Below, one piece after another: positions 250 through 42,800 of a stretch of DNA of 64,000 nucleotides (positions are counted from its first letter, which is position 1; every line of letters starts with the position of its first letter). Where the stretch lies: positions 82,708,001-82,772,000 of the forward strand of contig NC_083228.1 in the NCBI RefSeq assembly GCF_032191835.1, read 5' to 3'. A model generated the notes under the pieces. That model saw nothing but the letters and a program-made list of their open reading frames with translations. It was not told the DNA's origin and made no database searches. The translations under genes were made by a program, and so were the position numbers. This DNA is from Heteronotia binoei (lineage: Eukaryota).

Positions 250-13222
<12,973 letters not shown>

Positions 13223-15999: not shown

Positions 16000-17934
16000 C
16001 CTATACTGCTGATACATCCCACCTAATAACACTGAGCAATACACGTCTGTACTCCCGAAGCTTTTTTTTTTCGGGGGTGGGGGGGAGAGAAACAACATGG
16101 ACTAGTTATCTATGTTATTTGGCCTTGAAGCAAGATGCAAAGTTAACGACCAAAAATATGACTTGGCTTTTTTTAAAAAGTTGTATATATGGAAGGTAAA
16201 ACGTATGAACAAAACTAGGAGGCAACGAATATTAAAAAAGCAACTTCAGTAGGTTATTGGCCTGTTAATGGAAGCACATTTATCACACATTCACTACAGC
16301 ATCAAATGAGGATGTACACACATGAATGAACTATTCATCACTGTGCACGAATGAACTTTCACATCATCCAATGTCAACTCAAACACATTGTTTAATAGAG
16401 ACAGTTCATATCCAGCTGAGAACCATCAAGTACTATACATACATCTGTGAACCATGGTTCCATAAATCTCCACTCTGACAATATTGTACATCTTTCTGTA
16501 CATCAGAAACATTTACCCATAAAAACTATTTATGGAGGATATGCATATTGCTGAATTTCTCAGATCTTTTTTGTTTGAGGTAAGATTATACAAATGGAAC
16601 ATATGCATGTGCGTTTCTGCTCATGTCACCCACCAAATCATGTAACAGGGGCACATACCACCATGCATATAGTATGTTTGTATTTCAACCTGCCTTATCA
16701 AAAAAAAAGAGCCAGAAGGCAAGAAAACAGGACTTATGCTTAGTGCTGAACTGGAAACAAAAATGTATACAACATACTACTACAATCTCTTTCTAGGCTT
16801 TAAAAACAACTTCCTGGTTCAATGAATATTACAATTGTATTACCACTACATTTGGAATTCATAGTCTTTATGCACTCCCATTCTGTGTTATGTTCCATTT
16901 CTTATACATATGAAAGTCTCATGTATCTGATTACAAATTCTACTTCATCACAATCCTTCTCACCATCAATGATATTTAATTGCTAAGAATGCAGAAGATA
17001 GATAGTTGTTATCACATTTATATCTAAAGCCATTGTGTACATTTCCTGATCTTTCTTTTCTTTCCAACAAACCAATTTTCTCAGAACTTCACAAGTCTCT
17101 TTTGAACTAGGTATCTGCAAAGGCAGGCCAAGCAATCAATTTATCTCCTTCAGTAAACATGTAGTCTTCAAAGGTGCCAAACCTTTTCAAATCTCACAGA
17201 ATTGTAAACTGCAGATACTCAGTTTCTTAAAATCACTTATGGATTGAGGGCTTTTTGCAAGAAACTAGAGCACTTCTGAATTACAGAACCAATTACAATT
17301 TCACAATGGGGGTGTATGCTCTATTGGAACACCTAAAGAGCCAACAGACTACTAAGAGCCTCAGAAAGATCCTGCATTAAGATAACAGTCTCCTTTTAGT
17401 AACCATCTGATTGGTGACCATTTTTTTTCCTGAACTGATCACAGTCTTCCAGTCTTGGAGACACTGAGGATGGAATGGACAACATGCCTACTGTCTTGCA
17501 CTTCCTCTTTTAGCAGACTTCTGTACTACACCTGGGTAAAAAAGGTTTTTTAGAATCAGGGCTGCAAGTGATTGTGAATGCCCCATCTTTCCAGATAGCT
17601 TGATCCTGTAGTTAAATTAACCTCATGTAAATTAGCATTAATGTGCATTTCCAAACTAATTCTGTCTTCCTCTGCTATGCTACAGCCTTTTAATATCTAG
17701 CACTTTTAAGCTGTGAAGATACTGATACAGGCCAAAACAAATCACATTTTAACCTTCTCAGTAAGCTAAAAGCCATGTTCTACTGGTGTCATAGCTTTGG
17801 TGCTGTTGCTGTACATTTATGGAGCCCAACATAATATCTACATCAACTTCCAATTGATCAGGCTATTTTAAGACCTCTCCAAACTCTTTTCAACTTCAAC
17901 AGAAGCAACCTCCACTAGCAATTCACATGTGAAT
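16000..17934 (-). pseudogene. Probable decayed remainder of the transposase (approximate bounds)
   Basis: AT-rich stretch directly 3' of the 291-aa ORF with no ORF >=60 aa in the track; faint HTPHCEIVIGSV reminiscent of the hATm CRHH..EIV motif. Confidence 0.3.
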
Positions 17935-18810
17935 TTAGCAATTTTCATATTTGTCAAAAGTCTCATAGAACCCTGGTCTGACTTTTCTGATGCTCATACG
18001 TATATGCTGACATTCATGAGGAACTGTCTCGCCATAGCTAGTTGAAGTTGGAGTCCCCGTAATCCAGCCAGAAGATAGACGCTTCCTTTTTGCCTTATGT
18101 GAAAAGTCTGCAACTCCCTTGCTGTGTTCAAGACAAGAGTCATCTTTATTCCTATCACTGACTTCTTCATCTGGCTGTTCATCTGTATTGGAATCCATTC
18201 CTTTACGCTTACAAGTTTCTTTCTCTTCTTCTGCAATCTTCCTGAAATGTTCCAGTGACTGCACTTTTCTTCGTCTTTCTAATGTTTCCATCTGCTTCTT
18301 ATCCATGAAGTCCTCAAAGTACATTTTTCTTTCACTTCTTTGATCTTCAAGAAATTTCCACTCAGTGTCTGTCATCTTCACACCACTGTATTGTTCCAGT
18401 TTCTCTCTTGTAACTGTATCTGTACAAAATATATCAAAAAGCTGTTCTGAGCTCCTGTTGAAGTCATCCGCTTTCTGTGTAAACAGCTCATTTTTTCTTC
18501 GCTTTCTGGACTGATACAACTTGGAGAATTCCTCATATACCTTAAGTATATGATTTTTAATGTTATGTGTTGCTATGGTGTACAAATTGCAAAATAACCA
18601 GTGTTCCTGCAGAAGTTCAGCAAGCAATTGGGCAGCATCTTCTTTGGATCTCTGGGCCTGCCCAGCTCTTTTTGGGTGCAACAGATATAACATATTTTGG
18701 ATGACATCCTTCTTTGTAGGCAGAATTCCTTGTGCAAATTCCGATGACTCCACATAATCAACAGTTCCCAGAGTTTTCTTTGCTTTTGCTTTAGTATCCA
18801 AAGCTGCCAT
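17935..18810 (-). CDS. 291-aa ORF resembling the N-terminal region of hATm-like (Cc8K15.2-like) transposases; possible domesticated gene
   Basis: Uninterrupted ORF with good Kozak (acaATGG); pattern LPTKKDVIQ...W..C...T...I...I.K.Y.EF..L...F......LFDI...KFLEDQR.ERKM; strong acceptor 32 nt upstream of the ATG. Family assignment is from recalled motif similarity only. Confidence 0.6.
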   Translation of the reverse strand: MAALDTKAKAKKTLGTVDYVESSEFAQGILPTKKDVIQNMLYLLHPKRAGQAQRSKEDAAQLLAELLQEHWLFCNLYTIATHNIKNHILKVYEEFSKLYQSRKRRKNELFTQKADDFNRSSEQLFDIFCTDTVTREKLEQYSGVKMTDTEWKFLEDQRSERKMYFEDFMDKKQMETLERRRKVQSLEHFRKIAEEEKETCKRKGMDSNTDEQPDEEVSDRNKDDSCLEHSKGVADFSHKAKRKRLSSGWITGTPTSTSYGETVPHECQHIRMSIRKVRPGFYETFDKYENC

Positions 18811-19989
18811 TGTTTCTTTCCAGATTCACTTTACTTCAAAAGCTACAATAAAAGAGAAAAAGATATTAGGCATTTGAATCAGAATATTCATAGCAACAAA
18901 AATATAAAAATTGTATTTTTAAGCTACTCACCATCTAAGCCTGATATCAAAAGAATTAAAGCTGAAACACCAAGAAGAACTTAACATCTATAACCAAATA
19001 TTTTCTATACAATTTTTCTGAACACCAACCTCTGGGATGAAGGAGCCTTATAAAAACTAATAAAATCATTTGCAAAACAATATTGTCCTAAAGAGCAGCA
19101 CTATAGCATCTCAACAGATATTTAATCCATGTTACCTGTAACCTACATTTCCTCCAGTCTTTCGGTTGGTATAGAAATAATTTGTTCTAGCAGAACATGA
19201 ATCTAAGAAACAGTTCACGGGCAACACACTAGTTATATTTTATTCACTGCAGAAAGTCATTCCATGTTTCTTTCCTCCCTCATAAGTTTTATTAATTTTT
19301 ATATTACATGTATAATATGGTTTCAGTATGAACTCTAGATTCTAGCAATGGTGCAGGGTTTGTCTATACTACAAGTGCAGTTATCTTACTGTCTGAATCA
19401 TACACATTTTCAAACCACACACTAATGAGCAGTTGAATGTCTGTATTCTGCCTGCTAAAAATGAATAGTATAGTGACAAGGCTGTATTCAAAGAATATGC
19501 TGCAGCACTTCCTAGTTGTCTGAAGATCTGTTAATCTTTCCCTCCCAGAAATATTAGCAACTGTTTTGAAGTGCCCCACTTATATCTTTCTACAAGCCAC
19601 TACATTTCAGTTATCTGTACTGAAATATCAAACACTTTCTCAATATGAACATGTTCATGCATAATGCTATCAACAAGATTCAGTCCCATTATATTTTAAT
19701 TTCCTGAGCATACTTTGAAAGAATGTTCTAAAATACTTAAGGGGGCAGAAGGAGAAAACCTTACACTGACTGCAGAGTGGAAGTATCCAAGAGGTAGCAT
19801 CAGACAGCATACACGGAATGTTTACAAATTTGTGTGTTCACTTAGCTTTTAAAATGTGATGAGATGCTGAATCAACAAATTTAGTTGTAGAGACTTCAAG
19901 AACGTTCATAAATTCTGAAATCCCGTCTTTCTTTTAAATGCATCTGAATACACCAGCGGACCAACCATAATGGAGAACGCTTTCCTTCC

Positions 19990-21450
19990 TAGCATCTAGC
20001 AAAATTGGTTTACGGAGGCCAATCAGAGGAAGTAAAATATGATCATAAAAGGGAGGGGGGGCTGTTAGCTAAGAAAACGCTGCGCTTTAAAAACGCGTAG
20101 GAGAACCACGGAGGGATCTAAAATCCTTGGTCTGACAGAAAAATCTATATAAATGCACGCATATTATTGCCTGCCAGTATGTCATGGGCAAAATGGGCAT
20201 AGCGATCCAGCCTTCACACACCCCAGCCTTACTCTCACCTTAGAAAATAACGCCAGAAAACAACCTCAGCTAGCGAAAACAACACAGGTCCGTGAAGGTG
20301 GACTGGGGTGGGTGGGGCGCCGTCCTCCCTCCCCACCCTACAGACTAGGCCGCCAGAGACCCAGGCTCCAAACGTTCCTCGAAAGCCGGCCAGAATCTAT
20401 ACCCGTCGCCTGACCAGCTCTTATCGTGCCTGCCCTTCGCCCCTAAGACCTGCCTTAGGGCCTCGAAACTAACCGAATCAAGGACGCCAGTCGCCTGCCG
20501 CCCGTCCACCACCATCTTAGAGTCAAGGATCGCTACGCAGTGGGAAAAGGGAAATAGTACCCCTCTCCGCCATCTTGAAAAAGGGCAACGCTCACATACC
20601 TCGCAGTAGCTCTTCTATCCTAGCGTCTCTATGACCTAATGCGCAAGCCTCAATCACAAGGTACTTTCAAAAATTAATGCAAATGTTGGCAACTTGTCTT
20701 TTATCCTCACTTTATATCTGAGGCGAAAGAACGGCCAGAGGGATTGCTTGCACAGAGACGAAAAATAAGGACACAACCGGGAGATAAGAACGACCAATCG
20801 CTGTCAGGTAACCTTTACCGGTGGACGAAAACCTTAGAATACAGGAAGGGGACCTGATTCCGCAGGGTCTGCGTCTATCACATTCCTTTGGCGGAACCGA
20901 TTGGCTTTTAGCTCAGAGCTGATTGGTCGTTGAGCCACAACGGTCATAATGAGACGTTATGAATCTCTGGGGCGGAAATGAACGCTTCCAAATATCAAAC
21001 GGGATAAACAGTTCTTTCCGGGCACCACCAGTGCTCTGTTTTACTAACGAGACTGGCAATACGGGAGAAAAAACGCATGGCGCCAGGTCTAAGAGCCGTG
21101 GTTTACTATGCCGCCGTGCTAATCCCTTTTATTTCGCGTTGTAGGAATATGATTGGTCTGATGTGTGAGAAAAAAGTGTCATAGCAGCCAATAGCTAGCG
21201 GGTGAGTTGTAGGGTGCGGATTGGTTTTTTTGTTTGAGGGATTGTGCCTTGGAAGCCAATGACTGTGCTCTGAGGTCCACATAAGGATGGCCTTGGGGGC
21301 TCTGATGCTGCTTTTAGTGTCTGTGAGTTTTGTTTCCAGCGAGTGCTGGGACTGGCGGCTGCGGAGACTTGCTGGGCGGGCACGAAGATGATTGGCATTC
21401 TCTGTTGTTTGTCTGTAGGCTCCGCTCCTTCGACAACCGGCTCCCTGGTG
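19990..21450. promoter_or_regulatory. CpG-island, probably bidirectional promoter
   Basis: CpG-rich relative to flanks; CCAAT/ATTGG boxes at 20019, 20794, 20900, 20922, 21152, 21188, 21220; YY1 motif CCGCCATCTT 20567-20576; ETS-like GGCGGAAATG ~20970; donors on both strands (plus CGG|gtgagt 21201; minus GAG|gtatgt 20600 and AAG|gtgaga 20239). Confidence 0.8.
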
Positions 21451-22194
21451 GAGATGGAGGTTTTGTTTGGCTGTTGCGGCTAATAAACCATTCAGAGCTT
21501 CCTCCATTTTGCTTTCCACAGATCCAGTTTCAATTTCCCTGGTTAACATTTTGCTTTGCAAAGATTTAGTGTCAAAATGTATAAATAAAAAGAAGTTGCC
21601 GTTTCATTTGCATCCCCAGTATGTTCTCTCCCGTCCAAAGTGAGAATAGCTCCCACAGAAGTGTACCGTGTGCTTGGGGGAAATGTCAATAGACAGCTTT
21701 CTCTGCACAGCGCTCAGCTATACTCTGGCCAAGGACTTGCCCACTTCATCATCTGAAGGTACTGATGATTGTATTTCTATGATTTGATCAACAGTAGGCC
21801 ATGGTACTACATGCTCAGTGGCTGGATCCACATCAGGAGCTGTCTATTTGTTGAAGAGAGGGAGAAGGGGACACCAAGGGACCTTTGCATAAATAACACA
21901 GAAAATGTGTATTTGTGTGGAGGGGGGAATGAGAATACCAGAAGGAATGGATGAAGCAAAGCAGGAAGCAAACAAAAGCATAAAGTCCTGCTTTGTGTTC
22001 TGTTGCCAAATGCACAAAAATAGTTTGTATATTATATGGAAGAACTCAAGCTTGCTCATTGCACCATTAATTTTAATGTTTTATTTTTGTAAGGCAGCCT
22101 AGCAGTTAAGAGGCCTTTGGCCCCTGACAGCAGCAGTTCATAGGGTGTCTAGCAGTGTTTCCTCTATTTCCCATCCCCCTCCCCCCCCCCAGAC

Positions 22195-24843: not shown

Positions 24844-27800
24844 GTTTTTAGTTGTTCTTATTACTTTAGAAGAGGCTGTTTTTCATAATGCAAAGTGCCA
24901 AGATACTCTTATGTGAGCTGTGATTTAATTGGAAGTCAGCTCCTGAAGAAATGTGCAAAAATCAGGCTGCAGATCTCCTGACACAATTAAAAGGGTCCTA
25001 GGGCAGATGGCCAGGAACAGCAAGACTGTGTTAATTTTGCAAGACTGATAGAAAATTATTTTTGATTATGAACAAAAGAATCTGGAGATGTCAGATTTAT
25101 GCATGCTTCAGATGAAATGTTTGTCAAAGCTGGTGTCACACAGTCATCAGTGTGAAAAAAGACAGCAGGTTTTTAAACTTCAGAATACTAGTGTCAGCTG
25201 TTCATTAAATGTTGTAGCAACAGTTGTTCCAGGGAAACTTTGTTAAAAGAACAATTTCCATTTTTGTGATCAAATGATTTATATTCCAACTGAACAATTA
25301 TAGTATTCATGCATCTGATTTCCTCTTCTATGGTAACAATCCTGCTCCATTTCCTGCAGAAGAATTTACATGGATTACAATGCAACCACCCCACTGGCAC
25401 CTGAGGTGATTCAGACAGTTAGTGAAGCCATGCAAGAAGCTTGGGGCAATCCTAGCAGTTCCTACACAGCAGGTGAGAGCAGGCTTGCGTGGAAGTATGA
25501 GAGTATCTCCTTTTGCATACAAGTGGGTCTTCAATTGAAGCTCAATCCCTTGTTCAAGTCACTAGCAATAAGGATTAAGGGTCAAACTAGACATGAGAGC
25601 TCTCAGTCTTCAATACAGGTAAATTGTGCAAGAGCAGAGTATTTCAGTTACTGAAGTTATCCAGATGTTCTTCCTCAAAAGAGCACAGATGTCGCAGGAA
25701 CATCACATTTCCCCATCAGTTTACAAAGCAATATACCAGTGGAGAAGCATGATATATTTGAATTTGAAATTACATTTGACTTCAGTGAATTTAGAAGGGT
25801 GTAACTCTACTCAGGATTGCACTGTTAGCCACATTAATTCAATGCAAACATTCTGGTTGTTTCTCCATTGTCTGTTTTAGATAATAAATTTATTCAGGAC
25901 AGGAACCTGACTACATTTGCCCGTGTAACTCAACAAGCCACTGACGGTTGCCTGTTATATTAATGGCAATGAAGGTTCTCCCCCATTCTGACTTGATTGC
26001 ACATTTATTAAAGGAACAGAGATAATGCATGCATTTGTTTTAAACACTTTGAGCACTTCTGAATGGTAATGCTTAAGCTCAGGAATACTCATGCTGATTT
26101 GAAACAGAATGAGAGAGAGCTAGCTAAGACAATGCAGAAACAACCTCATTTTACTGATCAAATGGAAAAGTACTGACTTTATGACATCTTTTTAGTGTCC
26201 CTGGGGACATTCTGGTATATGTGAGAGTCACAGACCAAACTTGTTTCTATTTTCAGTTTTAACCAGGTTTTTAATATACTGTAATGAAATGCTTCTTTTT
26301 CTGTGACCCAGTCTTTATCACTCACTGATAAATGTTTTTGTAAAGACCACAAAGTCAAACTTCTGGAATTTGTTTTTGTTTCTTAACATATTGCTATTGT
26401 ATTGGAATAACATTTGCATAGGTATAACCTTTCAGTATTACTATCTTTTGAAGACTTCTGTTTTCTTAGTTATCAGTAAGCTGAACTTTGGGCTTTGATT
26501 CTACAGGTCAAAGGGCTAAAGAGATCATAAGTGAAGCTCGTCAGAGTCTGGCTAGAATGGTAGGAGGACAGCCCCAGGACATCATCTTCATTTCTGGTGG
26601 GACAGAGGTATGGTTGCCAATCCCCAGGTGGGGCAAACCGGAAACTGCAGTGTACTGATTAGCAAACACTAGAAATAAACCACTGCGTTTTTATGTTGCA
26701 AATAAATGCTTAAGCAATTTTTTTCATAATGATGCAATTATCATCACAAGCCAAAATTCATTAAATGTCCATAGAAAAATCAAAAAGTTATTTCACACCA
26801 CTCTTGTAAGGTAGTACTTTCAAAATCAGAATGTTATTTCACATCACTCTTGTAAAGTAGTACTTTACAGTCCACTGTCTCAGTTCTCCTTTGCTTGAAA
26901 GACGTAGACAGTATCACACTTGTATATGATTCCTCCTATGGGTAGCAGACCAAAGTCTGACAGGTGCGGCGGCTACACAGGTCCTAGGTTCAGTTCTGTG
27001 TTTCATTCACCTTCCACTGGCCGCTTTCTTTTAGCTTTGGAACTTTAACATAAATAAAATAATCATTTACCATACAAATCATAACTAAGCATAACAAATA
27101 TTTCTCTGATACAAACCAATCAATGCTTACCCTGTGCTAAAGGCAATTGCTCATACATTACAATACAATGTTACTTTGCAGCTTGCACAAATGGTTCTCA
27201 AACACACCTGATTCTCAGGCAGCATACATAGTACCATACAACTGTATCCAATTTACACTTAAACTGATATACACACATATATTTTCATGCCATTTTTAAA
27301 CAAATACAGACAAATCCAGTGAGGCATTCAGACCCCGGGGGAACATGGTCTGAAATTTATGAATAAAAAAGGCTTCCTTTTGCAGTAGGATTTTAGAAAC
27401 ATTCTCTATATTATATTGATGCCCTTTATAAGCATGCACCACTCCACACTGTATCTCATCACATGAGCGTCCAAATTCAGCACAGTGCTGGACAATGAGA
27501 GCATCTAATATGTTCCAAAAAACGTGCTCTCAAATTGCGCATATTTGAGCCAACATAATGCCTGGAACATGGACACCTTAAAATGTAAATTATTCTTGAG
27601 GTGGTGCAGGTGCTTAGATGAGTCAATCTCCAAGTAAAACCATTTATAGTAAATTCCTTAATCTCAATAGTATTATCACAGATTGAACAATTTCTGCATT
27701 TAAAATGGCCCCTTAGTCTGGCCTGCATAGGAGGAATCTTTACACACATGTCTGATCTTATTAATATGTCCCTCAGTGTTCTGCATTTCTTCCAGCCAAT

Positions 27801-30800
27801 CATGGGAAAAGAAGCACACCCAGGAAGCTCGTCTATCATGTGCCAATGCCTTCTCAAAATGTTGATAATCTGTTTTGATCTGACTGAATATTGGAAGGCA
27901 CAGACCAATCTTTGGTCTGATCTCTGTTGCGATCCCATCTTATCCTGCAATAACTCACATCTATCTTTAAAGTTAGCTTTTAATAAAGCATTCTGCAAAA
28001 CATCCTCAGGATAGCTCTCTCTCTCTCTCTTTACGTTGTTGTAAATGTCTATAAAGGTTCAAAAAATCAGTTTCTTTTGTGCAAACTGATTTTTACAAAC
28101 TGCTCATAGGGTAAATTATATTTAATGTGAGGAGGATGAAAGGATTCAAATTGCAATAGAGAATTTTTATCAGTGGGTTTTGTATATAGTCTAATTCCAA
28201 GCCGATCATGCTCATTCCTGTATACAATGGTGTCTAAAAAATTAATTTCTAATAGATCGCTGTGAGCTTCAAATTTAATAGTTGGGTGTACATCATTACA
28301 CCATCTCACAAAACTGTCAAGCGTGCTCTGATCTTTATATAGAAGACAAATATCATCTATCTAAAATACTGTACAATATTTGCATGAAAAGGATTGCATT
28401 GTATATTCATGAAAAACTTCTCTTTAAAATTTTCCATGATTAAGTTTGCTATATCTGGAGCACAAGGAGAACCCATGGTTGCCAATCTCCAGGTGGGGGC
28501 AGGGGATCCCCTGGAGGCCCTCCCTTCACTTCATGGTTAACAGAAAAGTGGGGGCAGGAGGAAATGTCTGCTAGGCACTCCATTATACCCTATGATCGGT
28601 TCCCATAGGGTATAATGGAGAATCAATCTGTGGGTATCTGGTCCTTGGAGGGGGGGCTGTTTTTTGAGAAAGGGGCACCAAATTTTCAGCATAGCATCTG
28701 GTGCTACTCCTCCAAAAAACAACAACCAAGTGCTGTGAGTCCCAAAAGAAGGTGCCTCCATCCTCCATTACTTCCAATGGAGGGAAGGCATTTAAAAAGA
28801 ACATTGTCCCTTTAAATATGATGGCCTCAATTACCTTTGGAGTTCAATTGTGCTTGTCAAAACCTAGCTCCTGGCTTCACCCGTAGTCTCCTGGCTCTAA
28901 CCCCAAAGTCCCCAGATATTTCCTGAGTCAGAGAACCCTAGACAGAGGTGAGATGGAAAAGCAGCAAAAAGAACAGTCCAGAACACACAGGTAGGTTTTT
29001 CTGAGCCAGTGTGGTCTAAGCACTGCTGTTAGGTTATTGGGCTAAGACTTGAGAGACCTGTGTTCAGATCCCCATAAAACTTCCTGGATGGCTATAGTAA
29101 AACCATTCTTAGCCCAGTCAATCTTTCAGCTTAACCTACTTCACAAGGTTGTTGTGAGAATAAAATGGTGGAGGGTAGAACTATGTGTGCCATCTTGAGC
29201 TCCTCAGAGGAAGGGTAAAAGAAAAAGAAAAATATGACAGACTTTATTTGTAGTTCCAGGTTAGTCTGAAAAAACATCGATCAGAGCAAAAGAAAAGTTA
29301 GGCTTCTTGTGCAGAACAGGTCTTGTTTTTATTTAAAACAGGCAAGGCATGACTGATTGATTCTTTCAGATGATAGCTGTGTTGGTCTGCAGTAGAACAG
29401 CTAGATTTAAGTCCAGTAGCACCTCTGAGCACCTTATAGATTGATTCTGTTAATTATTATAGATCTGCCTTTGAGACCGAACCAAGAGTTCACTTGATTG
29501 ATAGACTAGTGCATTGCCCTCCAAGGACTATATTTTCAAAATTGGATTTGAAGCAGGCCTGTAGCCACAGTGGGGTAGGGTGTGCTATTAACCTCCATGC
29601 CCCATAACTTCATCTACCCAGTAATCCAAATTTTAAAAATGATTTAAATTGTGCTGCAGTGCAGTGTGCCTTGCTGGCATCCTGCCCCTGCTGTGCCTGC
29701 CGGATGCAAGAGATTCCTGGAAAGAACTTTTGCAAGGGGTGAAAACAATGGCAGCAGTAAGAGACCGAGGCGGCTGGTGCCGTCCTTTCCCTGCTAGTCC
29801 CCAGGGATGCCCAAATGCGCAGATGCATTTCTTCCATAGAGTTAGCAAGGAAATCATATAGAAAGAATTCCGGTTCCCAGTCCACAAATTGTGATTTTCA
29901 TTTCCCCTGCACCGCGCACCAGGAATTCCTGCAGGCAGCTTTTCCTTTTCGTCTTTTCCAAATCTGACCATTTTTACAATGATGGGAGTTTTGCTTCCTG
30001 TCTGTCTCTGTTGAAGGCTGGAAGGAGCAGGTAAAAATAGATGTGCATTTGGCAGCCCTGGGAATGGCATTCATTTGAAAGGGATGGCTCTGCTTGTAGC
30101 TGTCACTCATGATAGGAGTGCAGGACAGCAGTGAAGCCTGGGTCTCAAGGGGGTAGGGGTAGGTAGGCCACACTCCAGCATTGCTCCAGATTCTCCCCAC
30201 CTTGGCCATCACCTGCTCTGGCACTGGAGGAAGCTGAGACAGCTGGGGTGGTGAGGGAGAGGCACACTGCAGACAGGCAGCATAGCAGACTCCTTGCCCA
30301 TCTCCTGCTCTAGCACCTGCCCTCCAACTTATTTAAATGCCCCCAAAGGAAAAAAATCCTGACAATGCCCCTGATTTGAAGTAACCAATAGGATCTGTAT
30401 CCTGCCCTTTTCTGCAGGCAAATAACTTGGTGATCCACACTGCAATGAAGTATTTTAGAGAAGGCAACAAGCAGAGACATAATGGGCTAAGAGATCAAAA
30501 GAAAACTTGGGGGACATATCCACATTTAATTGTGTCTTCTGTTGAACATGACTCAGTCCTCCTCCCCGTGGAGCACTTGGTGAAAGAACATGAGGCTGGT
30601 GAGTATCAGCCACTGTATTTTTGTATTTGTATATGTGTGTGCGTGTATGTGAGTGTGTGTGCACATGTGAGATACAAAATGAAATAGGACTGTGGTAAAA
30701 TAGTAAAAGAAAACAAGATAAACATATTAAGAGAGATGCCTAACAAAAACTTCAGCTTCCCAAAATGACACAGACACATTAAATATGAAAGGAAAGAGCA

Positions 30801-33800
30801 GTCTCTGAGTCTTCTTGAAATGGCATATGCTCAGGATCTGCTGGAGTATGACTGGTGATTGATTTCATAGTTCATCACTGGATACCAACCTAGTCCAAGA
30901 TTGGATCACAAAATAATTCTCAGGGCCAGATTTTAATGAACAGGAAGGTGTATGTGGAAGAAGGTGTACGTTCCCATATTTCAAACAAAAATAGAAAATG
31001 GGACAATAAGCTATGAAGATCTTGCCCTCTTTCCTCCTTCACACACATGATTTTCCCTTCCGTCTTCTCTCTTGCTGAGCAGCATCTATATCAGTTTTCT
31101 TCTTATATGTTTGCCTATGGCTGTCCTGCCACACACACACACACACTCCTAACTGGGCATGAATTACTTAGCTATTCTCCTTTTTTTTGCTTGAATGAGG
31201 ATCCTCCTTGATCCACTCACTCCCCTAGCCTCCTTCCCAGTCCACAATCAGTGCCTAACTGTATCTTCTTCAACTGTCAGTTCCTAACTGTCATTCCTTA
31301 ACTGACACTCTCAACAGCATTCCATTTGAACAACCTGTCACTCAAAAGTTCTCAGACTCTGTTAGGCATTAACTCTTGACAGTCCATCACCTAAGTATAT
31401 GAACATTAATTTTCCATCATGCTGGTTTTAAAAGAATATATTTATTACACATCTTCTGAAACTACTCCCCAAAGTAGTGTGATTCATGCAATGAACTATG
31501 GCATTAGCTTGTTTGCACTCTAATTTGCAGAAGCCACTTTTGTCCCAGTGTCCAAAGCAACTGGGCAGGTGGAAGTAGATGATGTCATTGCAGCAGTCCG
31601 TCCAACCACATGTCTGGTTTCTATTATGCTGGCTAATAATGAGACTGGAGTTGTCATGGTGAGTTGCTCCTTTAGTTAGTATTGCCCACATGTTCAAGGG
31701 GAAGGGGTTTAGTTTTCTGTATGTGACAACACTATAGTGAGCAGTCCTAAGCATGTCCACTCAGAATCCTTAGGCTATTCGGTGGAGCTTATTCCCAGGG
31801 AAGAATTTTTAAAATGGAATTGTTAATATCAAATATGCATCAGAGAAATTTCACTGGTCTTTCTTCTCTCTCCTTTTCCCTCTGTATTACCGGTAACTGT
31901 TCCCCCTTCTCATTATTCCTTTTCATGAGGTTAACTAGTCATGTATCCTATAATCTTTCAGTCAGCCCTATATTAGTTTTTAATGACTAAATGTGTTAAA
32001 GTATGCACACAAAATGAAACAGAAATAAGACTAGAAAAATAGAAAATAGACAAAATATCAGATCAAGATCGAAATGTCTTCAACAATTCTAATCTTATTA
32101 GGGATTGGGATGATAATTGAAATTTGAAATAGACTCTTTGGCTCAAGGATATGGAAGCTATAATGTGCAAAGCAGCCTGAAGTGGTCACTTGTTCATGTA
32201 AGATATTCTATAGTGGCATCAAATACCAAACCTGAAAGGCAGTAAGTAGTGTTTTTGTCAGTACGAAGCTCCCTGACTGTGTTTGTTTTCTCATCAGCCT
32301 ATCTCAGAACTCAGTAAGCAGATTCAAGCTCTCAACCAGAGGAGAGGGGCATCTGGTCTGCCACGAATCTTGATACACACAGATGCAGCCCAGATGATAG
32401 GAAAGGGTCAAGTGAACGTGCAGGACCTGGGAGTGGATTATCTCACCATTGTAGGACACAAGGTATGGCTGTCTTCTCTTTAGACATCTCTGTATGTTGT
32501 ATAAGAGATGGCCACATATCTAGGTCAGCCATGACTATCCCATTACTTACTGAGCTGGGAGCTTGTTCTCTACCTGTAGAGTGTTTGTGTATCTTGGATA
32601 GTCAATGTGGAGAGGAGAATAAAGAATGTCTTAAAGAGATTAATATGCCAAACTGGAAACTGGCAATAATCCATTTACGTAATTCTCACTCATGCAGTTC
32701 TGAATATGCTGGATTGCAGGCAGTGGTGCAGGGCTACATTTGCTCCTTATGTATTGGAAGAGTTCAGTGTGCTATCTCCAACTCATATGATATTAGAGTT
32801 TTTCTCTTCTCAAGAAGATGTCTAAAGATTTGTTGGGAGTTGTACAAGTTTTTGTTTGAATTTCTCTTTCACTGCTTCTTAACCTTACAAGTACAGAGTT
32901 TTCAATATGTACAGACACTGCAGAGAACAAACAATATAACTATCTCACTTTGTCTTCTTCTGAATTCAAAAAATCAAGTGCATTGGTTCTTAAATGTTGA
33001 TCAACTGAGTACTACTATTCTGGTTTCTTGGTTCTTTGCTGACTACTTTATCTTGTAGATCTCCTGGCCACCATGTGGTTTCCATTTTGGAAGCTGATTG
33101 GAAGGTTTTTTCATATGGTCTCAGAAATGGTCTCAGAAATGTAAAACTGAAATGAACAGTGGTGTCTTTATAGATACCTTGGTGACACAGAGTATGCACA
33201 GAAATAGCAATTTCTTCCTGGCTCTGCTAGCAATGCCTCCCCTTTCATCCTTCATGTCTAATAGAGCTACATTTGCAGGTAGAAGGTTCTGAATCTTTAG
33301 TTATTCATTTTAACTGCAAACTTGATGGATCTATGCTAATCAATAGGGCCGTAAAAAGAGGCCACCGCAGATAAGGCTGAAGGTTAAATATGTTCAGAGG
33401 TTTTCCCAAATATTCAGGAAAATATAAGTCTGTAAATTTAGAAAAAGACATGCATGCCCATGACTCGGTGAACTTGATCATTTTCCCTCAAAGAAGAACA
33501 GAAGGTTGAGGGCAGTTAAATATCAGTAGAAAAATAGGGAAACCAAGGTAATAGTGATGGTGGGAATTGTATGAGGCATGCATCTTCCAACCATAATTCC
33601 CATCCCTAGTTTTGAGGGCTGTCTGCTTTCATGGCCTGTGAAGCCTTTAAAAGTAAGAGTTCTGAGGAAGAGGATTAAATAAGATTGGGGAACAACAAAA
33701 GTCCTCTAGCCATAATTAACATTTCCCCCCATCAAGGACTCTTTTAGCTGTAAAATGAATAGAGTCCTTATCGGCTTAAAGTAAACTGGAATGTGGAGGG

Positions 33801-36800
33801 ATGAAAAGAGGGTTAGGAATGAGCACCATAAGGCAGGCACCTCCTGAGCCCAATTTCTGCTCCAAACTCCCCCATGCAGGGTAGAAAAAGGGGAGGTAAA
33901 AAATACCCCTCTCTCATCTGCAGTACTCTGGTTTGGGGTTTGATATACAGATTACTTTTAGGATTTGTTCAGCAGGAAACTTTTCATGTGCACTCATGCT
34001 GTTGTGCTGTGGGTGAGAGAATTATCCCAACTTTTAAACATCATAATTTTGTGGCATACCTAAAAGGTCATTAATTAAAGATTAATTCATTTGTGTTTAA
34101 TGCACATAAGAATTTCCCCACTAGATGGTGCTGAATGTTCAAGATTTTTGTACTGTGTTGGAGCATGATATGGCTGAACAATATTCCATTACAGCTTTCT
34201 CTTATTCTCTGCCAGGAGTTCGGAGAGGTTTGGTAAAACTGAAAATGTAATTATTAAACTAATTGTGGCATCCAAAAGTATGTTTATTGTGTGGTTTTAA
34301 ATATTCCAAGTTGGAGGACAACAGGTGAGGGAAATATGTGGACCTGTCCATTGTATAATGTATATAGAAGACAGTGAAAAGTGGTCAGTGGCACAGTGTA
34401 TAGGATCCATCTATTTTTTTCTCTTTGTTTTCCTTTAGCAGCAACCAAGTTTTTTTTCTCTCTCTCTAAGCATTTATTTTCACTTCTCCACTCTGGGTGA
34501 GAGTTCATTTTATGGCCCATGTTAGTTTTACTTTTGTTTTTCTCTCTCATGTTAGGATCACTACTTAGTACTTGTTTGGGGTCCCAAGATATCTTTTGTA
34601 ATTTATTGTTGTAGTTTTATGGCCCACGGATCGGAGCTCTGTATGTGCGAGGACCTGGTACTTCCACCCCTCTCTATCCCATGCTGTTTGGAGGTGGACA
34701 GGAATGTAATTTTCGTCCTGGGTAAGATGACTATACTGTGGGTGGGCCTAAAGCGATTGAGAGGCCAGTACTGGAATCTGTGAGCAAAGTATCTTTTTTC
34801 TGCTGAGATTGAGGAGCTGCAAAATAAGGCAGTAAAAAGAAAACATATTAATCACTTCAAAAATATTTTCCTCATGTTTGTACACTGGGTATTCACAGGA
34901 AAGTAATTGAAAGGCTCATCTGTGCAAAATTGGTATTGCTTAGTTCATTAGCCACATTCTGTACAGTACAGAGGGTTAAGGATATCCAGGTGGGTAGTAT
35001 GCCAAGACTGTTCAGAAAACTATCACTCATTGAAAATGTATGTAGCCTTCTTATTAGTAGGCAGTGTAATGTTTGAAGGTTGCCATAGATTTTAAATAAT
35101 TCTCTATTGGTTTTTGGAGCTGGTTTAGAGAAGATCCCCTCTTTTATTGCCAATATCAGAACTTTTTGGTTAACAAGATCAGGCTTCTTTTTCCACAGAA
35201 TAACTTTCTCCACCTTTCTCAGTGTTTGAATTAGGATAACTGTCCAAATAGGTATAGTACCTGTGCAGCATATATTGTGCTGGGTAAGATGACTATACTG
35301 TGGGTGGGCCTAAAGCCACCTGTTGTTTTTTTTCTGTTCTAGGACTGAGAATACACCGATGATTGCTGGTCTTGGTAAGGTGAGCTAACCAGTAATACTA
35401 AGAGGAGTACAGATGAAATGCTGATTAGAACTTTGTTGTACAAATTGCATTCCTTCACAAAAAAAGGAGAAGCAAACTATCTTCTTATAGCAAAACAATC
35501 TTCAAACTTAGACCCGATGTTGCTGTCGTATTTATTTAACAGCTGAAGCAGCACAAAATAATCCAGGTTATCTGGGATTTCCCCTGGCAGTGGTAGTGCT
35601 CTCATGCCAAAATAAGGGCAGAGTCTTATGTTGTGTTACTTTGATTGACATGAGGAGTAAGAGCTTCCAATATGCATTACTTGCATGCCTGTGCAGCGCA
35701 GAACAGTGATGGGGGAAATGGCTTATAGCAAATGCAAGGGGTTTCCCATCATTATGGGTCCAGTTGTTGAGAGCTGGATGAAAGGTCAGAAGCTGTGATT
35801 CTAGGAGGATTGAGAGCAACTGGAGAAACTGTACAATAATTGCAGTTATACAAGCAACTTTTCAGGAACAAGATGGGGATACCACACTGGTTGGTAAATA
35901 TAGGAGGGGAGGGGAATAGTGCTCTAAACAGTTCCGAGCTGTGCAATGGCTTGTGGAGAACATAAGCAGATTTTCTTGCCTCTGAGAGTGCAGCACAGAT
36001 GTATGTGTACTGGGCTTTCTTTCAGCTGATATGAACATATGAAGCTGCCTTATACTGAATCAGACCCCTGGTCCATCAAAGTCTGTATTGTCTTCTCAGA
36101 CTGGCAGCTGCTCTCCAGGGTCTCAAGCTGAGGATTTTCACACCTATTTGCCTGGACCCTTTTTTTGGAAATGCCAGGGATTGAACCTGGGACCTTCTGC
36201 TTCCCAAGCAGATGATCTACCACTGAGCCACCGTTCCTCCCGGTGATGGTTCCTTTGGGTGTGAATGGGAGGTTAACAGTGCTCTCCTGCCTGTTCCAGC
36301 ACTACCTCTGGTATCTATCACCTGCTTTATTTTCTAAGGACATTCTCCAGTTTTCTCCAGTTTTTAAAATCGTGTTTACTGCACCAAGAAACATTTGTAG
36401 TTTTTATTTTGCAGGCAGCAGAACTGGTGAACAAGCACTGTGAAACATATGAGGCTCACATGAGGAAAATCCGGAACTACCTGGAAGAGAGGCTTAAAGT
36501 GAGCACACTAACATCCCTCAATTTTCAGCCGTTGTGTGGGGAAAGGAGATAGTTTTCCTGAAACTATGTTGTGCTAGTTATTTATGCAGCTATTTATAAC
36601 TGGCTTTTCTCCCCAGTGGGGACTCAGAACAGCTTACAACACCGTTCTCCTCATAACAACCACTCTGTGATGTAGCTTAATCTGACCCAAGTTCACTCAG
36701 CGAGCTTCCATGAAAGACTGAGGATTTGAACCTGGGTCTCCCAGCTCCTAGTCTGATCATTGTAACTCTCTGGAGTGTGTTTACACATATTAGAACAAGA

Positions 36801-39800
36801 AAGCATTTTCACCCTGTTAGGAGAGACTGCGAAAGTTGAATTCAAATAGAGATGAGGAGATAGACAAACTCTGCAGAAGAGTGGAAATAGAAACGAGCAC
36901 CAGGATTCTCTGTTTCCCTGTCACCACCACCATGAATGCAGAGGTATTTGCATTTGGCCACAGAGTGCTTACATAGGACCATCATGTGTACTCTCCTCTG
37001 TCAGCTACAGTTTCTTTGACTCTCCCCCCCAACATGTCACCAATGGGTTTATTTTACTGAAAATAATTACGGTTGTGCTATTACATTTGTTGCCACAATC
37101 TATTCACTCCACTGAATTCCCGTTTTTCATTTTTAAAAGTCTCTAGTCCTTTTCATTGTTGAGAAACACCTTTCCTCTTGTAGGCCACAATGAAAAGTGC
37201 TCGTGGCTTACTTTTTAAAAATTGAAAACTGGGAATTCTGAGGAGCTGGTAGAGTATGGTGATACATAGGTAGCAATTACCACCCTCTGATGATATGGAG
37301 GAACATGATGGGCACAGGAAGCAAGAAATATGGTGTCAGTGTGGGTAGGACCTTCTAAAATGTACATCTTCCCACCCAACCAAAACAAAAGGAGGAAGCC
37401 ATGAAAACAAACCTGAACCAGAAGCTACAAAGCTCATGGCCGCAATTACTAAACATTCAAAGTATGACACTAGTGTATTGTTATTATTCCATCAAATGTG
37501 CAATTAAATAGACAATTATACAGAAGGTAACAACTCACATATCAAAAATATCACGACTTGACTTCAAGGAATTTATTCCCTCTGCTGCTGGGGTTTCAAT
37601 AGCCTCTTAAAGGAGAAGAGTTCCAATGACAAGATGATTCATAAAGTCCACAGTCCAAAATATAAACCTTCATATACAGACTCCCATCTCTTTCGAAATT
37701 TCTTGTGGACCATGAACTAAGTCTGCTGATGTCCCCAAAGTGACAACAGGTCGCTAGCTGAGATCAGCCATTTCATGTGTTGCTTCTTCAGGTAACAGGA
37801 CAGAAAGATGTGAGTCAATCACCATCTGTCAGATGTACAAAAACATTCTGAAAACATTTGCTCTACAATTTGTATGCCTTAAACAAATCTCAAGATATCA
37901 CTATCATATGTCATCATTTAGATATAAAATCAACTTACCCATTCATAAGAACATCTTAATCACAATGAGCCACAAACAAAGCTGGCTTTTCAAGACATTC
38001 AGAAAGACTGTCAGAAAACCTCACATTCTAAATACTCTTGATTATATACAGCTGTGGCATGCATAAAACCCCTAGTCATATACTAGGACACTGAAATTCA
38101 TAATGTATGGTCCAAATGCAAATACAAACTTCTGGACATCTTTAAATTGCAATGAAGTTACAGACGCACATCATATTATTCAAACTGACAGTACAGAATA
38201 AATAAAAGCAGTATTCCCATCCAGTCAGCTTGCTAAGTCACTTGGGCTTCACTGTTTTGGAAAAATTGTACCAAAGCAAGTTACAGCAAGAACATAGTGA
38301 GAAAGAGAGACGTATGGAGAATGGATGATGAGGAGAAAAATCTGTGTGTGGATATAGCCATATAGTGAAAGGTTGGGATGGGAAGAACAGCAAATCATTG
38401 CATTGGCCCAAGCTTCTGTTTACTTTACTGGGGCAAATGCAAGTCATGGAAAGCTACTGGGATAATTTCTTGAACATGCTCTTCTTCAGGTCTCTTGCTG
38501 ATGAAATGCTATTTCTTTGAATGATCATTTTGGTCTATGGTAGCTAGCGCAATGTAGCCATAACATAGGAGTAGCCTTTGCTTATGTGCCAGCAAGACTT
38601 ACACTCGAATAATTCACATCCAGAATAATTTCAATATCACATGGCTTACACCCAAAATAATTAGATCTGGGTTGGTGTGGGGGCATCAGTAATTAAAGAC
38701 ATGTTAAAGTCTTTCTCTTAATATTCCAGACTGTGTTCGAAGAACAAGGAATCCATTTCAACTGTCAGCTGAAAGGCTCTAGGCGACTCTGCAACACCAG
38801 TAATTTTTCTATACTGGGTTCAGGATTACAAGGTAACCCACTATGGCTCTAAACTTGTACCATCCCTAGAATCACAGAATCATATTTGGAAGGGTCATCT
38901 AGTCCAACCGCCTGCACAATGCAGGAAGTTCACAGATACCTTTCTGTATGGCTACTGTCAGACACATGAGGAGTAAAACAGTTTGAATTTAAATGTATTA
39001 ATTTGTTCCGATTTTATTGTTTTATTATTTGTTGTAAGCCGCCCTGAGCCACTTGTGGGAAGGGCGGGATATAAGTTACGGAATAAATAAATAAATATCC
39101 AACACAAAATGGATGCTAGTTTTGCTTGTACATTTCAGAGAGCTCTGAGAGAGAGCAGAGTAAGTGCTATAAGGGTGAGGTTTGGCTTTCTAAGCAGCTG
39201 GGGAAGTTGCTGAGAATTTCTGAGTTTGTGTGACTGCTGATAATTCTGAGTTTGTGTTTGCTGGGGAACTGCTGTCTGTTTGGTTTGAGTGGGCTGAAGG
39301 TGATTGTTGCTGATTGATTAGGAGTGGCTGTGTTCCCCACCCTCTTTGCATTATTAAGCTGAGGGGGCTGTGTAAGGACCAGGAATCCAGATTCCTATTT
39401 TTCCTTGTGTTCCCAATAAGGTAAGTTGACCCTCCAGAAGGGAAGTTACAAAAACAACAGGATTTAAAAGGGGACTGTATATTTTTTTAAAAAGCTATCA
39501 TGAAGGTAGAATGCCAGCAGTGAGGTGGGGGCTTTCCAGTGTTTTGTCACATGTATGACTATCTGTCCACAGGACAGAAGTCTTGGGTGTGTTCTCGATG
39601 CAAGGAGCTCCTGGTCCTCAGGGAACGAGTTCATACCCTTGAGGCCGAGGTGACTGACCTGGAGAAGCAGAGACAGTCAGGCACTCGGGGAAGACTCTCG
39701 GGGGCATATTAGATGAGCCCCACTCTGAACATGGCAGCCCTGTTGCTTCCAGGGAGCATAAGGCGAGAGGGAACAGGGCACCGTGCTGAGGATAAGGGGA

Positions 39801-42800
39801 ATGTGCCCTCAGAAGGGACCTCTTCTTCAGTTGGTGAGCGGGTATCCTTACGCACCAAGGAACTATCCCTGGGCAGGGAGAGGGGGGGGGGTCTTGGTAG
39901 TTGGTGACTCGATCCTTAGGCAAGTAGACAGCTGGGTGACAAAACCGCGTACTGACCGTATGGTGACTTGCCTGCCTGGTGTGAAGGTGGCGGACATTAC
40001 ACGTGTAGTAGATAGGCTGATAGACAGTGCTGGGGAGGAGCCAGTGGTCGTGGTGCATGTTGGCACCAACGATGTGGGGAAATGCAGTTGTGAGGTCCTG
40101 GAGGAAAAAGTTAGGCTGCTAGGCAGAAGACTTAAGGCCAGGACCTCCAAGGTAGCCTTCTCAGAAGTGCTACCTGTTCCACGTGCAGGGCAGGAGAGAC
40201 AGGCACAAATTAGAAGTCTCAATGTGTGGATGAGACGATGGTGAAGGGAGGAAGGGTTTAAGTTTGGGATGCTTTCTGGAACAAGCGGGAGCTGTACAAA
40301 AGAGACGCTCTCCACTTGTCCCAGAAGGAACCAGGCTGCTGGCGCTTAAAATCAAAAAGGTGGCAGAGCAGTTTTTAAACTAAATCTTGGGGGAAAGCCG
40401 ACAGGAGATGAAATGTCTCTGTTTTGGGAGGACTCATCTCAAAGAGATGAAGGGTTAGCTGTAACTTTTCTACTCAGAGTTGTCCACTGAGATGGTGACA
40501 AACAGTATGGACTGTCTGCCAAAGTCTCAAGGCAGCAGGAGGAAGGTTACGGGCCTAGCTTGCCTGGGAAAATATAGATGTTTGTATACAAATGCTGGAA
40601 GTGTTTGAAGTAAAATTGGTGAGTTGGAATGTTTAGTGTTGGGAGAAAACATAGACATTGTGGAAATTTCAGAAACTTGGTGGAATTAGGAGAAACAGTG
40701 GGACACAGTGATTTCTGGATATGTTATATCGGAAGGATAGGGAGGGAAGGGTTGGAGGTGGGGTGGCTCTGTATGTCAGAGAGGGTATACAGTCCAGTAA
40801 GACTGAGGTCAGAGAATTAGATTCCCTTCTAGAAATGCTTTGGGTTGAAATAGAGGGCCCAAAAGGAAATTTAACTATGGGAGTTTGTTATCGCCCACCA
40901 AATCAAAAGATAGAGGACGATTATAATATGATGGAAAGATTAAAGATAGCGACTAAATGTAAAAACTGTGTCGTAATAGGTGATTTTAGCTACCCACAGA
41001 CTGATTGGGTCAATATGTGTTCTGGTTGAGAGAAAGAGATTGAGTTTCTAGATGCTCTCAGTGACTGTGCTATGGAGCAGATGGTCTCATAACCTACCAG
41101 GGGTGGGGCGATCCTGGATTTGGTCCTAAGTAATGCCAAGACTTGGTGAGAGATGTAAAAGTGATCGCACCGCTTGGGAGCAGTGACCATAACATTATTG
41201 ATTTCACCATTTGTATAAATAGAGTGTTGCCCCAAAAGACCAGCACAACCACGTTTAACTTTAAAAGGGGTAAATTCTTTGAGATGAGGAGGCATGTGAA
41301 AAGGTAAATACAGTCAAAACCCTTGGGGAAGCTTGGAGGCTATTTAAAACTACAATCCTAGAACCTCAGATAAAATATATACCACAAGTTAGGAAAGGCA
41401 CAAACAGGTATAAGAAAAGGCCTGCATGGTTAACAAACAAAGTAATGGAAGCTGTAAAAGGTAAGAAGGACTAATTTAAGCGGTGGAAAGCTAGTCCAAG
41501 TGAGATTAATAAAAGGGAACACAGGCTGTGGCTAATCAAATGCAAGACTGTGATCAGGCAGGCAAAAATGGACTATGAGGAGCATACTGCAAAAAACATA
41601 AAGACCAACAATAAAAATTTCTTCAAATATATTAGAAGCAGGAAACCAGCCAGGGAGGCAGTGGGACCCTTGGATGACCAAGGGGTCAAAGGATTACTGA
41701 AGGAGGATAGGGAAATGGCTGAGAAGCTGAATGCATTTTTTGCTTCCGTCTTCACTGTGGAAGAAGAGAAATGTTTGTCTGCTCCAGAACCACTTATTTT
41801 GGTAGGGGTGTTGAAAAACCTGAGTCAGATTGAGGTGACAAGAGAGGAGGTCCTACAACTGATAGACGAATTAAAATCTAATAAGTCACCAGGTCCGGAT
41901 GACATACATCCAAGAGTTCTGAAAGAACTCAAAGTTGAACTTGTGGATCGCCTGACAAAAATATGTAATCTTTCATTGAAATCTGCCTCCGTTCCTGAGG
42001 ACTGGAAGGTAGCAAATCTTTAAAATCTTTAAAAACGGTTCCAGAGGAGATCCGGGAAATTACAGGCCAGTCAGTCTGACTTCAATACCGGGAAAGTTGG
42101 TAGAAACCATTATCAAGGACAGAATGAGTAGGCACATTGATGAACACGAGTTATTGCGGAAGACTCAGCATGGGTTCTGTAAGGGAAGATCTTGCCTCAC
42201 TAACCTGTTACAGTTCTTTGAGGGGTGAACAAACATGTGGACAAAGGAGACCCAATAGATGTTGTTTACCTTGACTTCCAGAAAGCTTTTTATAAAGTTC
42301 CTCATCAAAGCTCCTTAGTAAGCTCGATAGTCATGGAGTAAAAGGACAGGTCCTCTTGTGGATCAAAAACTGGCTAATTAATAGGAAGCAGAGAGTGAGT
42401 ATAAATGGGCAGTCTTCGCAGTGGATGATGGTAAGCAGTGGGGTGCCGCAGGGCTCAGTACTGGGTCCCATGCTCTTTAACTTGTTCATAAATGATTTGG
42501 AGTTGGGAGTAAGCTGTGAAGTGGCCAAGTTTGCAGATGACACTAAATTGTTCAGTGTGGTGAGAACCAAAGAGGATTGTGAGGCACTCCAAAGGGATCT
42601 GTTGAGGCTGGGTGAGTGGGCGTCAACGTGGCAGATGAGGTTCAATGTGGCCAAGTGCAAAGTAATGCACATTGGGGCCAAGAATCCCAGCTACAAATAC
42701 AAGTTGATGGGGTGTGAACTGACAGAGACTGACCAAGAGAGAGATCTTGGGGTCGTGGTAGATAACTCACTGAAAATGTCAAGACAGTGTGCGATTGCAA

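Follow-up and report, generated by a model that had tools for sequence, protein, structure and literature searches.

A sauropsid gene between SCLY and AIRE derived from the N-terminal part of a hAT-like transposase

Several vertebrate host genes descend from transposases of the hAT type, including the ZBED family, FAM200A/B/C, ZMYM1, GTF2IRD2, KIAA1586 and P52rIPK. These single-copy genes keep the core of the catalytic fold and often carry a BED or THAP finger. Here, we describe a gene for a 291-amino-acid (aa) protein in a 64,000-nucleotide stretch of the Heteronotia binoei genome (contig NC_083228.1, positions 82,708,001 to 82,772,000), referred to below as the window. It is likewise single-copy and hAT-type-derived, and its transposon relatives have a fold that matches those of the genes named above. 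In contrast to the latter, however, it keeps only the N-terminal third of the transposase that precedes the core, lacks both a BED finger and any Pfam domain and has been seen only in sauropsids. A second precedent is provided by host-transposase fusion genes, in which a non-catalytic part of the transposase is likewise reused and a splice acceptor immediately precedes the transposase ATG (Cosby et al., bioRxiv 10.1101/2020.05.07.082677). While these genes carry a host domain, the 291-aa gene has none fused to it and implies a non-coding upstream exon instead. The main survey of such captures in tetrapods was based on Pfam transposase domains (bioRxiv 10.1101/2020.05.07.082677), and Pfam-based domestication surveys cannot find this gene because its family has no Pfam model. 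We found no paper on it. Models of the gene are already present in public annotation, so that the new element is its origin as a domesticated hAT-type transposase gene.

The 291-aa open reading frame (ORF) is an expressed gene, strongly conserved across lizards, snakes, turtles, crocodilians and birds. The original prediction, made from the nucleotide sequence of the window, had described it as an intact minus-strand ORF with a Kozak-type start, located between AIRE and SCLY and followed by about 1.9 kb devoid of ORFs of at least 60 aa, all of which holds. The frame runs uninterrupted through 291 codons and a TAA in a single coding exon (17935..18810), its ATG stands in the context aacaATGG, with A at -3 and G at +4, and the largest ORFs in the ~1.9 kb beyond it measure 50-57 aa. 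A word-indexed search of 5.8 billion proteins returned orthologues of 274-316 aa, annotated as 'uncharacterized protein LOC...', one of them, that of Crotalus, by similarity to chicken LOC424740. Their identity to the window protein is 90% in Sceloporus, 87% in Anolis and Crotalus, ~70% in turtles, 66% in ostrich, 63% in alligator and 59-66% in many birds, and the ORF is intact in 25 or more species. In each of the six orthologous loci retrieved (Anolis, Sceloporus, Gopherus, Emydura, alligator and ostrich), the coding sequence occupies a single exon and a divergent gene of the Aminotran_5 family, SCLY, lies head-to-head with it; in ostrich, the next gene on the same strand as the orthologue encodes HSR and PHD domains and thus corresponds to AIRE.

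Selection on the protein was assessed in five species by the Nei-Gojobori (NG86) ratio of nonsynonymous to synonymous divergence (dN/dS), which lies at 0.07-0.20 overall. It amounts to 0.07 between the window and Sceloporus (dS 0.63), 0.10 between the window and Anolis (dS 0.63), 0.12 between Anolis and Sceloporus (dS 0.34), 0.10 between tortoise and ostrich (dS 1.53) and 0.16-0.20 between squamates and tortoise (dS 0.99-1.24). The constraint is concentrated in two transposase-derived modules, with ratios of about 0.00-0.10 for residues 1-180 and 265-291 in most pairs, compared to 0.27-0.53 for the linker between them (200-265). The syntenic ORF is thus under purifying selection across Sauropsida.

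Transcription was followed in two raw RNA-seq runs labelled as the same species and two RNA contig sets, aligned to positions 16100-22000, with a threshold of at least three reads for splice junctions. RNA cover over the gene is continuous from ~16297 to 18857 and falls from a raw-read depth of 3-8x to zero upstream of ~18857. One RNA contig of 2506 nt spans 16337-18843 and ends within one base of the predicted acceptor AG at 18844-18843. This acceptor (tattgtag, immediately followed by the exon) is used, and the 2.5-kb terminal exon begins at 18842, 32 nt 5' of the ATG. A polypyrimidine tract and AG recur in each of the seven aligned sauropsids, ~30-35 nt 5' of the ATG, so that the RNA cover is bounded by a conserved splice site, as expected for spliced expression. 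At the other end, cover stops by ~16.30-16.34 kb, past an ATTAAA, and depth is about 0 at 16100-16296; the 3' untranslated region (3'UTR) is therefore ~1.6 kb long and the transcript distinct from AIRE. These data bear on the notion that the ORF is an inert transposon remnant open by chance, or the upstream leader of an AIRE transcription unit. Such a leader would fit the position of the ORF, which shares its strand with AIRE and lies 3 kb upstream of it, but we give this explanation hardly any credence, given the preservation of the frame in so many species, the dN/dS of 0.2 or less and the separate end of the transcript near 16.3 kb.

The descent of the gene from a transposase is evident from its relatives. 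Searched exhaustively with HMMER, 1.84 billion cluster representatives yielded 440 related clusters, mostly fragments from short contigs, with named members in Branchiostoma, Asterias, Oratosquilla and Patella. Full-length relatives measure ~920-950 aa. Their first ~290 residues align with the sauropsid protein at 44-57% identity, and beyond the position of the sauropsid stop they continue with a conserved D...D...CxxH...E region, with invariant or near-invariant D364, D433, C460 and H463 (C460-x-x-H463) and a later ...NLD.ER.VG... motif. Pfam returned nothing relevant in 48 transposon proteins; PF05699 was matched by 0 of the 48 at E <= 0.01 and, in eight proteins, by none at E <= 1, and a profile of the transposon proteins had no match among the Protein Data Bank (PDB) sequences. 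By contrast with sequence, where no similarity to Hermes is detectable, the predicted fold is informative. For P0249, the closest full-length relative, the AlphaFold2 (AF2) model (predicted local distance difference test (pLDDT) 83) shows a beta-beta-beta-alpha-beta-alpha-beta core like that of ribonuclease H (RNase H), followed by a large helical region. Foldseek placed the Hermes hAT transposase at PDB ranks 1-12 (E 1.5e-5 to 1e-3), followed by the P element transposase, Transib and RAG1, and the best solved match, Hermes (2BW3, 4D1Q, 6DWZ; E 1.5e-5), reached a template-modelling (TM) score by target of up to 0.50. The top Swiss-Prot models were all of hAT or hAT-derived proteins, namely ZMYM1, FAM200A/B/C, KIAA1586, ZBED4/5/6, GTF2IRD2, Ac and RICESLEEPER. 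Many of these alignments begin at residue ~275, and the sauropsid protein has, apart from the first helix, none of the matched catalytic region.

Two amphioxus copies of ~4.4 kb each (L002:9051-13500 and L010:5227-9632) are clearly transposons. They have imperfect inverted ends of ~100-320 bp, which read TAGGGGGTGG or TAGGGAGGGG and begin with TAGGGGGTGGTATTA or TAGGGAGGGGTGTTA, corresponding to a TAGGG(G/A)G... terminus that fits the YARNG-type terminal motif, and they are flanked by perfect target duplications of 7 bp, TTTCCAG and TTGTTAA. The L002 transposase is divided between two overlapping ORFs of 534 and 417 aa in different frames. The target-site duplication of hAT elements is typically 8 bp long. 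Both amphioxus copies deviate from this length (n=2), whereas the predicted fold of the relative, a Hermes-like RNase-H-like DDE core with a large helical insertion, is that of the hAT superfamily. The original prediction had likened the protein to hATm or Cc8K15.2-like transposases. hATm elements have TAGGGTG termini (5'-TAGGGTG...CACCCTA-3'), long inverted ends, duplications of 8-9 bp and PF05699, and examples include copies from Cotesia congregata (Zhang et al. 2018, PMC6004678), which we infer to be the source of the name 'Cc8K15.2'. The parent family resembles them in its 5'-TAGGG ends, its long inverted ends and its hAT-like fold, and the modelled N-terminal domain of the sauropsid protein matches a 'Cc8K15.2-like protein'; the family differs in the 7-bp duplication of the two copies and in the lack of a PF05699 match in the 48 proteins. 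We describe the parent transposon, by comparison with the published description of hATm, as hAT-like and hATm-related; given the 7-bp duplication and the undetected PF05699, it is a candidate member of hATm proper.

A second, very abundant and insect-rich family of transposase-like proteins of ~740-760 aa (including P0116 and P0129, with members in phylloxera, Diabrotica, Bemisia, Diaphorina and Frankliniella) has only the N-terminal domain of ~165 residues in common with the sauropsid protein. The domain is followed by a different D...D...CxxH...E-like region, and this family has no Pfam model either. In addition, the 405-aa protein P0018 of Asterias rubens consists of two tandem N-terminal domains without a catalytic part, and the 163-aa protein P0050 of Oratosquilla oratoria of the N-terminal domain alone. 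These two proteins may be independent truncations or domestications, or mere fragments.

The direction of the transition can be read from a phylogeny and from the DNA that follows the stop codon. A maximum-likelihood tree built on the shared region unites the 25 sauropsid proteins in a single clade (Shimodaira-Hasegawa-like approximate likelihood ratio test 100), within which squamates, then turtles, then alligator and birds branch in an order like that of the species tree. This clade is nested among the full-length transposon proteins, adjoining P0039, P0040 and P0249. Moreover, the DNA after the stop encodes the continuation of the transposase, out of frame and interrupted by stops, and its translation in the window reads ...YHMS..QA.AAVV.VGN..FG..WK.H...VIDLDT.... 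Here, the match to the full-length relative extends 135 nt past the stop and contains five stops. With queries confined to the transposase beyond the truncation point, tblastn gave E 2e-6 in tortoise (nt 8-180 after the stop), 1.7e-5 in alligator, 7e-4 in Emydura and 0.13 in ostrich, compared to a best E of 0.48 for the reversed-query control. A hidden Markov model of the full-length transposon proteins, run in six frames over 6 kb downstream in five species, found two collinear marginal matches (E 0.06-0.08), both in tortoise and immediately behind the stop, and none farther downstream; in the same search, no remnant of the DDE core was detectable. The out-of-frame continuation indicates that a stop codon truncated a long transposase ORF, whose downstream part decayed. 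In six of the seven species, the truncating stops coincide in the alignment. In the alligator locus (L007:10855-10930), the annotated protein ends a few residues earlier (...VDKI), and ~60 extra nt separate the stop from the fossil segment.

The same observations bear on the reverse course of events, in which an old host gene would have donated its domain to invertebrate transposons. Such a capture would be in keeping with the fact that the N-terminal domain heads two different transposase-like families and is thus a movable module. We nevertheless regard it as very improbable, as it is at odds with the collinear fossil that the 3'UTR holds of the transposase segment immediately beyond the truncation, with the nesting of the sauropsid clade inside transposon sequences and with the lack of an orthologue outside sauropsids in protein searches. 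The fossil probably survived because the proximal 3'UTR is conserved: over its first ~220-250 nt, window and Anolis are 70-77% identical, as opposed to ~51% beyond, and positions 17690-17934 of the window align across squamates, turtles, alligator and ostrich (L003-L008), for instance as TGATCAATTGGAAGT..TGATGTAGAT. This conservation may reflect regulatory constraint.

Domestication is also apparent from the copy number. Dispersed copies with terminal inverted repeats and target duplications would mark a plain transposon remnant. Instead, the ORF is the sole match to itself in a six-frame search of the 2.63-Gb assembly; a full-length transposon relative as query, used in a stricter first look that weak copies could escape, revealed no second locus in the same assembly, and neither inverted terminal repeats nor a transposon end motif were found flanking the gene. 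Thus, transposase homology, a single syntenic copy without transposon ends, purifying selection and expression together provide strong support for domestication, and the original prediction that the N-terminal non-catalytic part of a hAT-type transposase had been exapted and the catalytic part lost is borne out.

We therefore hold it very probable that a truncated hAT-like transposase was domesticated in sauropsids. In the scenario we favor, a copy of a ~4.4-kb hAT-like (hATm-related) transposon would have lain between SCLY and AIRE in or before the ancestor of squamates, turtles, crocodilians and birds. Its transposase ORF of ~930 codons would then have been shortened to ~290 by a stop codon and, in this truncated form, have become a host gene, expressed from a spliced mRNA whose 2.5-kb terminal exon starts at the conserved acceptor. 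The N-terminal helical domain, the long helix, the acidic linker with its K/R patch and the first conserved helix of the core were retained, whereas the whole RNase-H-like DDE catalytic domain was lost, leaving only a decayed trace of the downstream ORF in the 3'UTR. Acceptor-like polypyrimidine-AG strings also occur 6-14 nt before the transposase ATG in transposon copies (L011:380-403 and L002:9860-9877), so that the acceptor of the sauropsid gene may be a legacy of the element itself.

The architecture of the protein follows that of the parent transposase. As predicted originally, it contains a helical N-terminal domain, a charged coiled segment and the basic strings SRKRRK and KAKRKR. The AF2 model, based on an alignment of 89 sequences, has a mean pLDDT of 77, with most of residues ~10-165 above 90. 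The N-terminal domain combines a beta-hairpin (residues 11-20) with six helices (33-158), shows dN/dS values of 0.00-0.17 in squamate pairs and preserves G28, L30, P31, H70, W71, C74, N75, F125 and D126, among others, which are near-invariant across transposon and host proteins. It is followed by the long charged helix, modelled at residues 168-205, and by a linker whose K/R-rich patch is conserved in the transposon proteins, with the consensus KKRR in two alignments. The C-terminal tail corresponds to the point where the hAT-like core region begins in the full-length transposase and carries H265 and R267, which are invariant in the transposases. Pfam returned only sub-threshold noise for the ORF, and a feature search of the ESM Atlas gave no usable match. 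In a Foldseek search against the PDB and a VIA-align wide search, only the long helix was matched, by coiled coils. In the AlphaFold database, the N-terminal domain matched the N-terminus or internal regions of several arthropod proteins (E 5e-9 to 2e-4), labelled 'uncharacterized', 'Cc8K15.2-like', 'MULE' or 'SWIM'. A two-copy homodimer prediction scored 0.00 with a fold pLDDT of 39 and bears neither way.

Because it lacks the catalytic domain, the 291-aa protein cannot be a transposase. In cut-and-paste transposases, the regions N-terminal to the RNase-H core serve in end recognition and multimer formation. By analogy, a nuclear protein without catalysis could act through these N-terminal activities, sequence-specific DNA recognition and/or multimerisation, as a DNA-binding regulator or adaptor or as a binder of chromatin or partner proteins. 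We tentatively consider a nuclear DNA-binding function to have close to an even chance. Truncated P-element proteins of the KP type act as repressors of their own transposon, and the sauropsid protein might similarly repress, or have first repressed, its parent family by competing for the transposon ends or poisoning multimers. In keeping with such a role, it comprises exactly the non-catalytic N-terminal region and the long helix, and the H. binoei genome contains no further detectable copy of the family. However, since no detectable cognate transposon is left, repression cannot explain the present constraint, that is, the continued strong purifying selection in five lineages, and it would account for an initial selective step at most; on balance, we judge it unlikely. 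Returning to a regulatory role of the domesticated protein, it is tempting to speculate, although we consider this less likely than not, that the ~160-residue N-terminal domain represents an undescribed fold class of transposon-end or DNA-recognition domain, fixed more than 250 million years ago as a sauropsid nuclear regulator upstream of AIRE. It might be co-regulated with AIRE or SCLY, and the proximal 3'UTR might form its own regulatory element.

Several points weigh against the account given above. The RNA libraries are unstranded, and the transcript is assigned to its strand by means of its acceptor, poly(A) signal and ORF. No junction from the terminal exon to any upstream exon reached the threshold of three reads in the two raw RNA-seq runs. 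Orthologues in mammals, amphibians and fishes are absent as judged from the matches of the protein searches. Synonymous divergence is saturated in the deepest comparisons, the squamate-bird pairs. As for function, DNA binding and nuclear location would follow by analogy from the N-terminal position of the region in the transposase; with the whole sauropsid model as query, the structure searches gave no solved-structure match to the N-terminal domain, and the isoelectric point of this domain, 8.8, makes it only mildly basic.

The coordinates of all features are compiled in Table 1. Upstream of the gene, the CpG island claimed by the original prediction is confirmed by an observed/expected (o/e) CpG ratio of 0.73-0.80, compared to 0.15-0.23 in its flanks. 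RNA reads occur at low level in 20434-20630, overlapping a squamate-conserved block whose two motifs we take to be YY1-like core-promoter elements by their consensus. These low-level reads and the conserved block make a bidirectional CpG-island promoter shared with SCLY plausible, and transcription probably starts in the island head-to-head with SCLY. On the plus strand, a GT..AG junction from 21200 to 21418 skips 217 nt and presumably represents the first SCLY intron. The SCLY exons in the window, identified by blastn against the ostrich locus, extend from 25367 to 44394 on the plus strand; they were not among the matches listed in an Aminotran_5 family search of the H. binoei genome. The HSR exons of AIRE are found on the minus strand, at 13067-13189 and 11830-12000.

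The exon structure proposed earlier for the 5' part of the gene stands only in part. The strings put forward as donors (~18931, ~20600 and ~20239) and acceptors (18843 and 18961) are all present. For the postulated 89-nt intron (18931...18843), the acceptor is the one described above, conserved in seven sauropsids, whereas its donor, ATG followed by gtgagt at 18931, is not conserved in Anolis or Sceloporus and has no RNA cover. Neither this intron nor the 30-nt mini-exon upstream of it is supported, as the bin 18858-19054 reads 0-0.1x and the exon is likewise unconserved in these two lizards. The donor at 20600 is not conserved in them either, and none of the proposed junctions (20600/20239 to 18961 and 18932 to 18842) appeared at the three-read threshold.

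Table 1. Features of the 291-aa gene and its surroundings, in window coordinates.
Feature	Position	Strand	Basis
Coding sequence	17935..18810	-	Intact ORF; single-exon orthologues in six other species; dN/dS
N-terminal domain, globular, mostly helical with beta-hairpin, residues 8-165	18316..18789	-	AF2; alignment with transposon proteins
Long charged helix, coiled-coil-like, residues 166-208	18187..18315	-	AF2; coiled-coil matches only, Z 4.5-4.8
Disordered acidic linker with KAKRKR (18079-18096), residues 209-260	18031..18186	-	pLDDT <50; dN/dS 0.3-0.5
Conserved tail (QHIRMSIRKVRPGFYETFDK...), residues 261-291	17938..18030	-	dN/dS 0.00-0.06; moderate model confidence
5'UTR portion of coding exon	18811..18842	-	RNA cover
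Splice acceptor (polypyrimidine tract and AG)	18843..18862	-	RNA contig edge; kept in seven sauropsids
3'UTR, about 1.6 kb, ATTAAA at 16391-16396	16337..17934	-	RNA contig 16337-18843; raw-read cover 16297-18857
Proximal 3'UTR, stop-ridden decayed fossil of next transposase segment	17800..17934	-	Genome search; translations; post-stop tblastn
Proposed 30-nt mini-exon	18932..18961	-	Unsupported: no RNA cover, not conserved
CpG island, separating the gene from SCLY	20000..21600	.	CpG o/e
Block in CpG island conserved with Anolis and Sceloporus, two AAGATGG(C/T)GG motifs; candidate core promoter or first exon	20509..20592	-	Alignment

Collectively, our findings assign an origin to a gene that the public annotation of dozens of bird and reptile genomes lists under no other name than 'uncharacterized protein LOC...'. 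They provide an unusually clean case of domestication, in which both the direction and the mode, truncation by a stop codon, are readable from a fossil in the 3'UTR. The combination of traits is uncommon, comprising the retention of the pre-catalytic third alone, the lack of any known domain, a sauropsid-wide distribution and a legible 3'UTR fossil. The small N-terminal domain, predicted to be well folded and without a solved match, is a target for structural and DNA-binding work. Moreover, the gene is sauropsid-specific as far as seen and lies beside AIRE, which makes it a candidate for lineage-specific regulation that would be testable in chicken cells.

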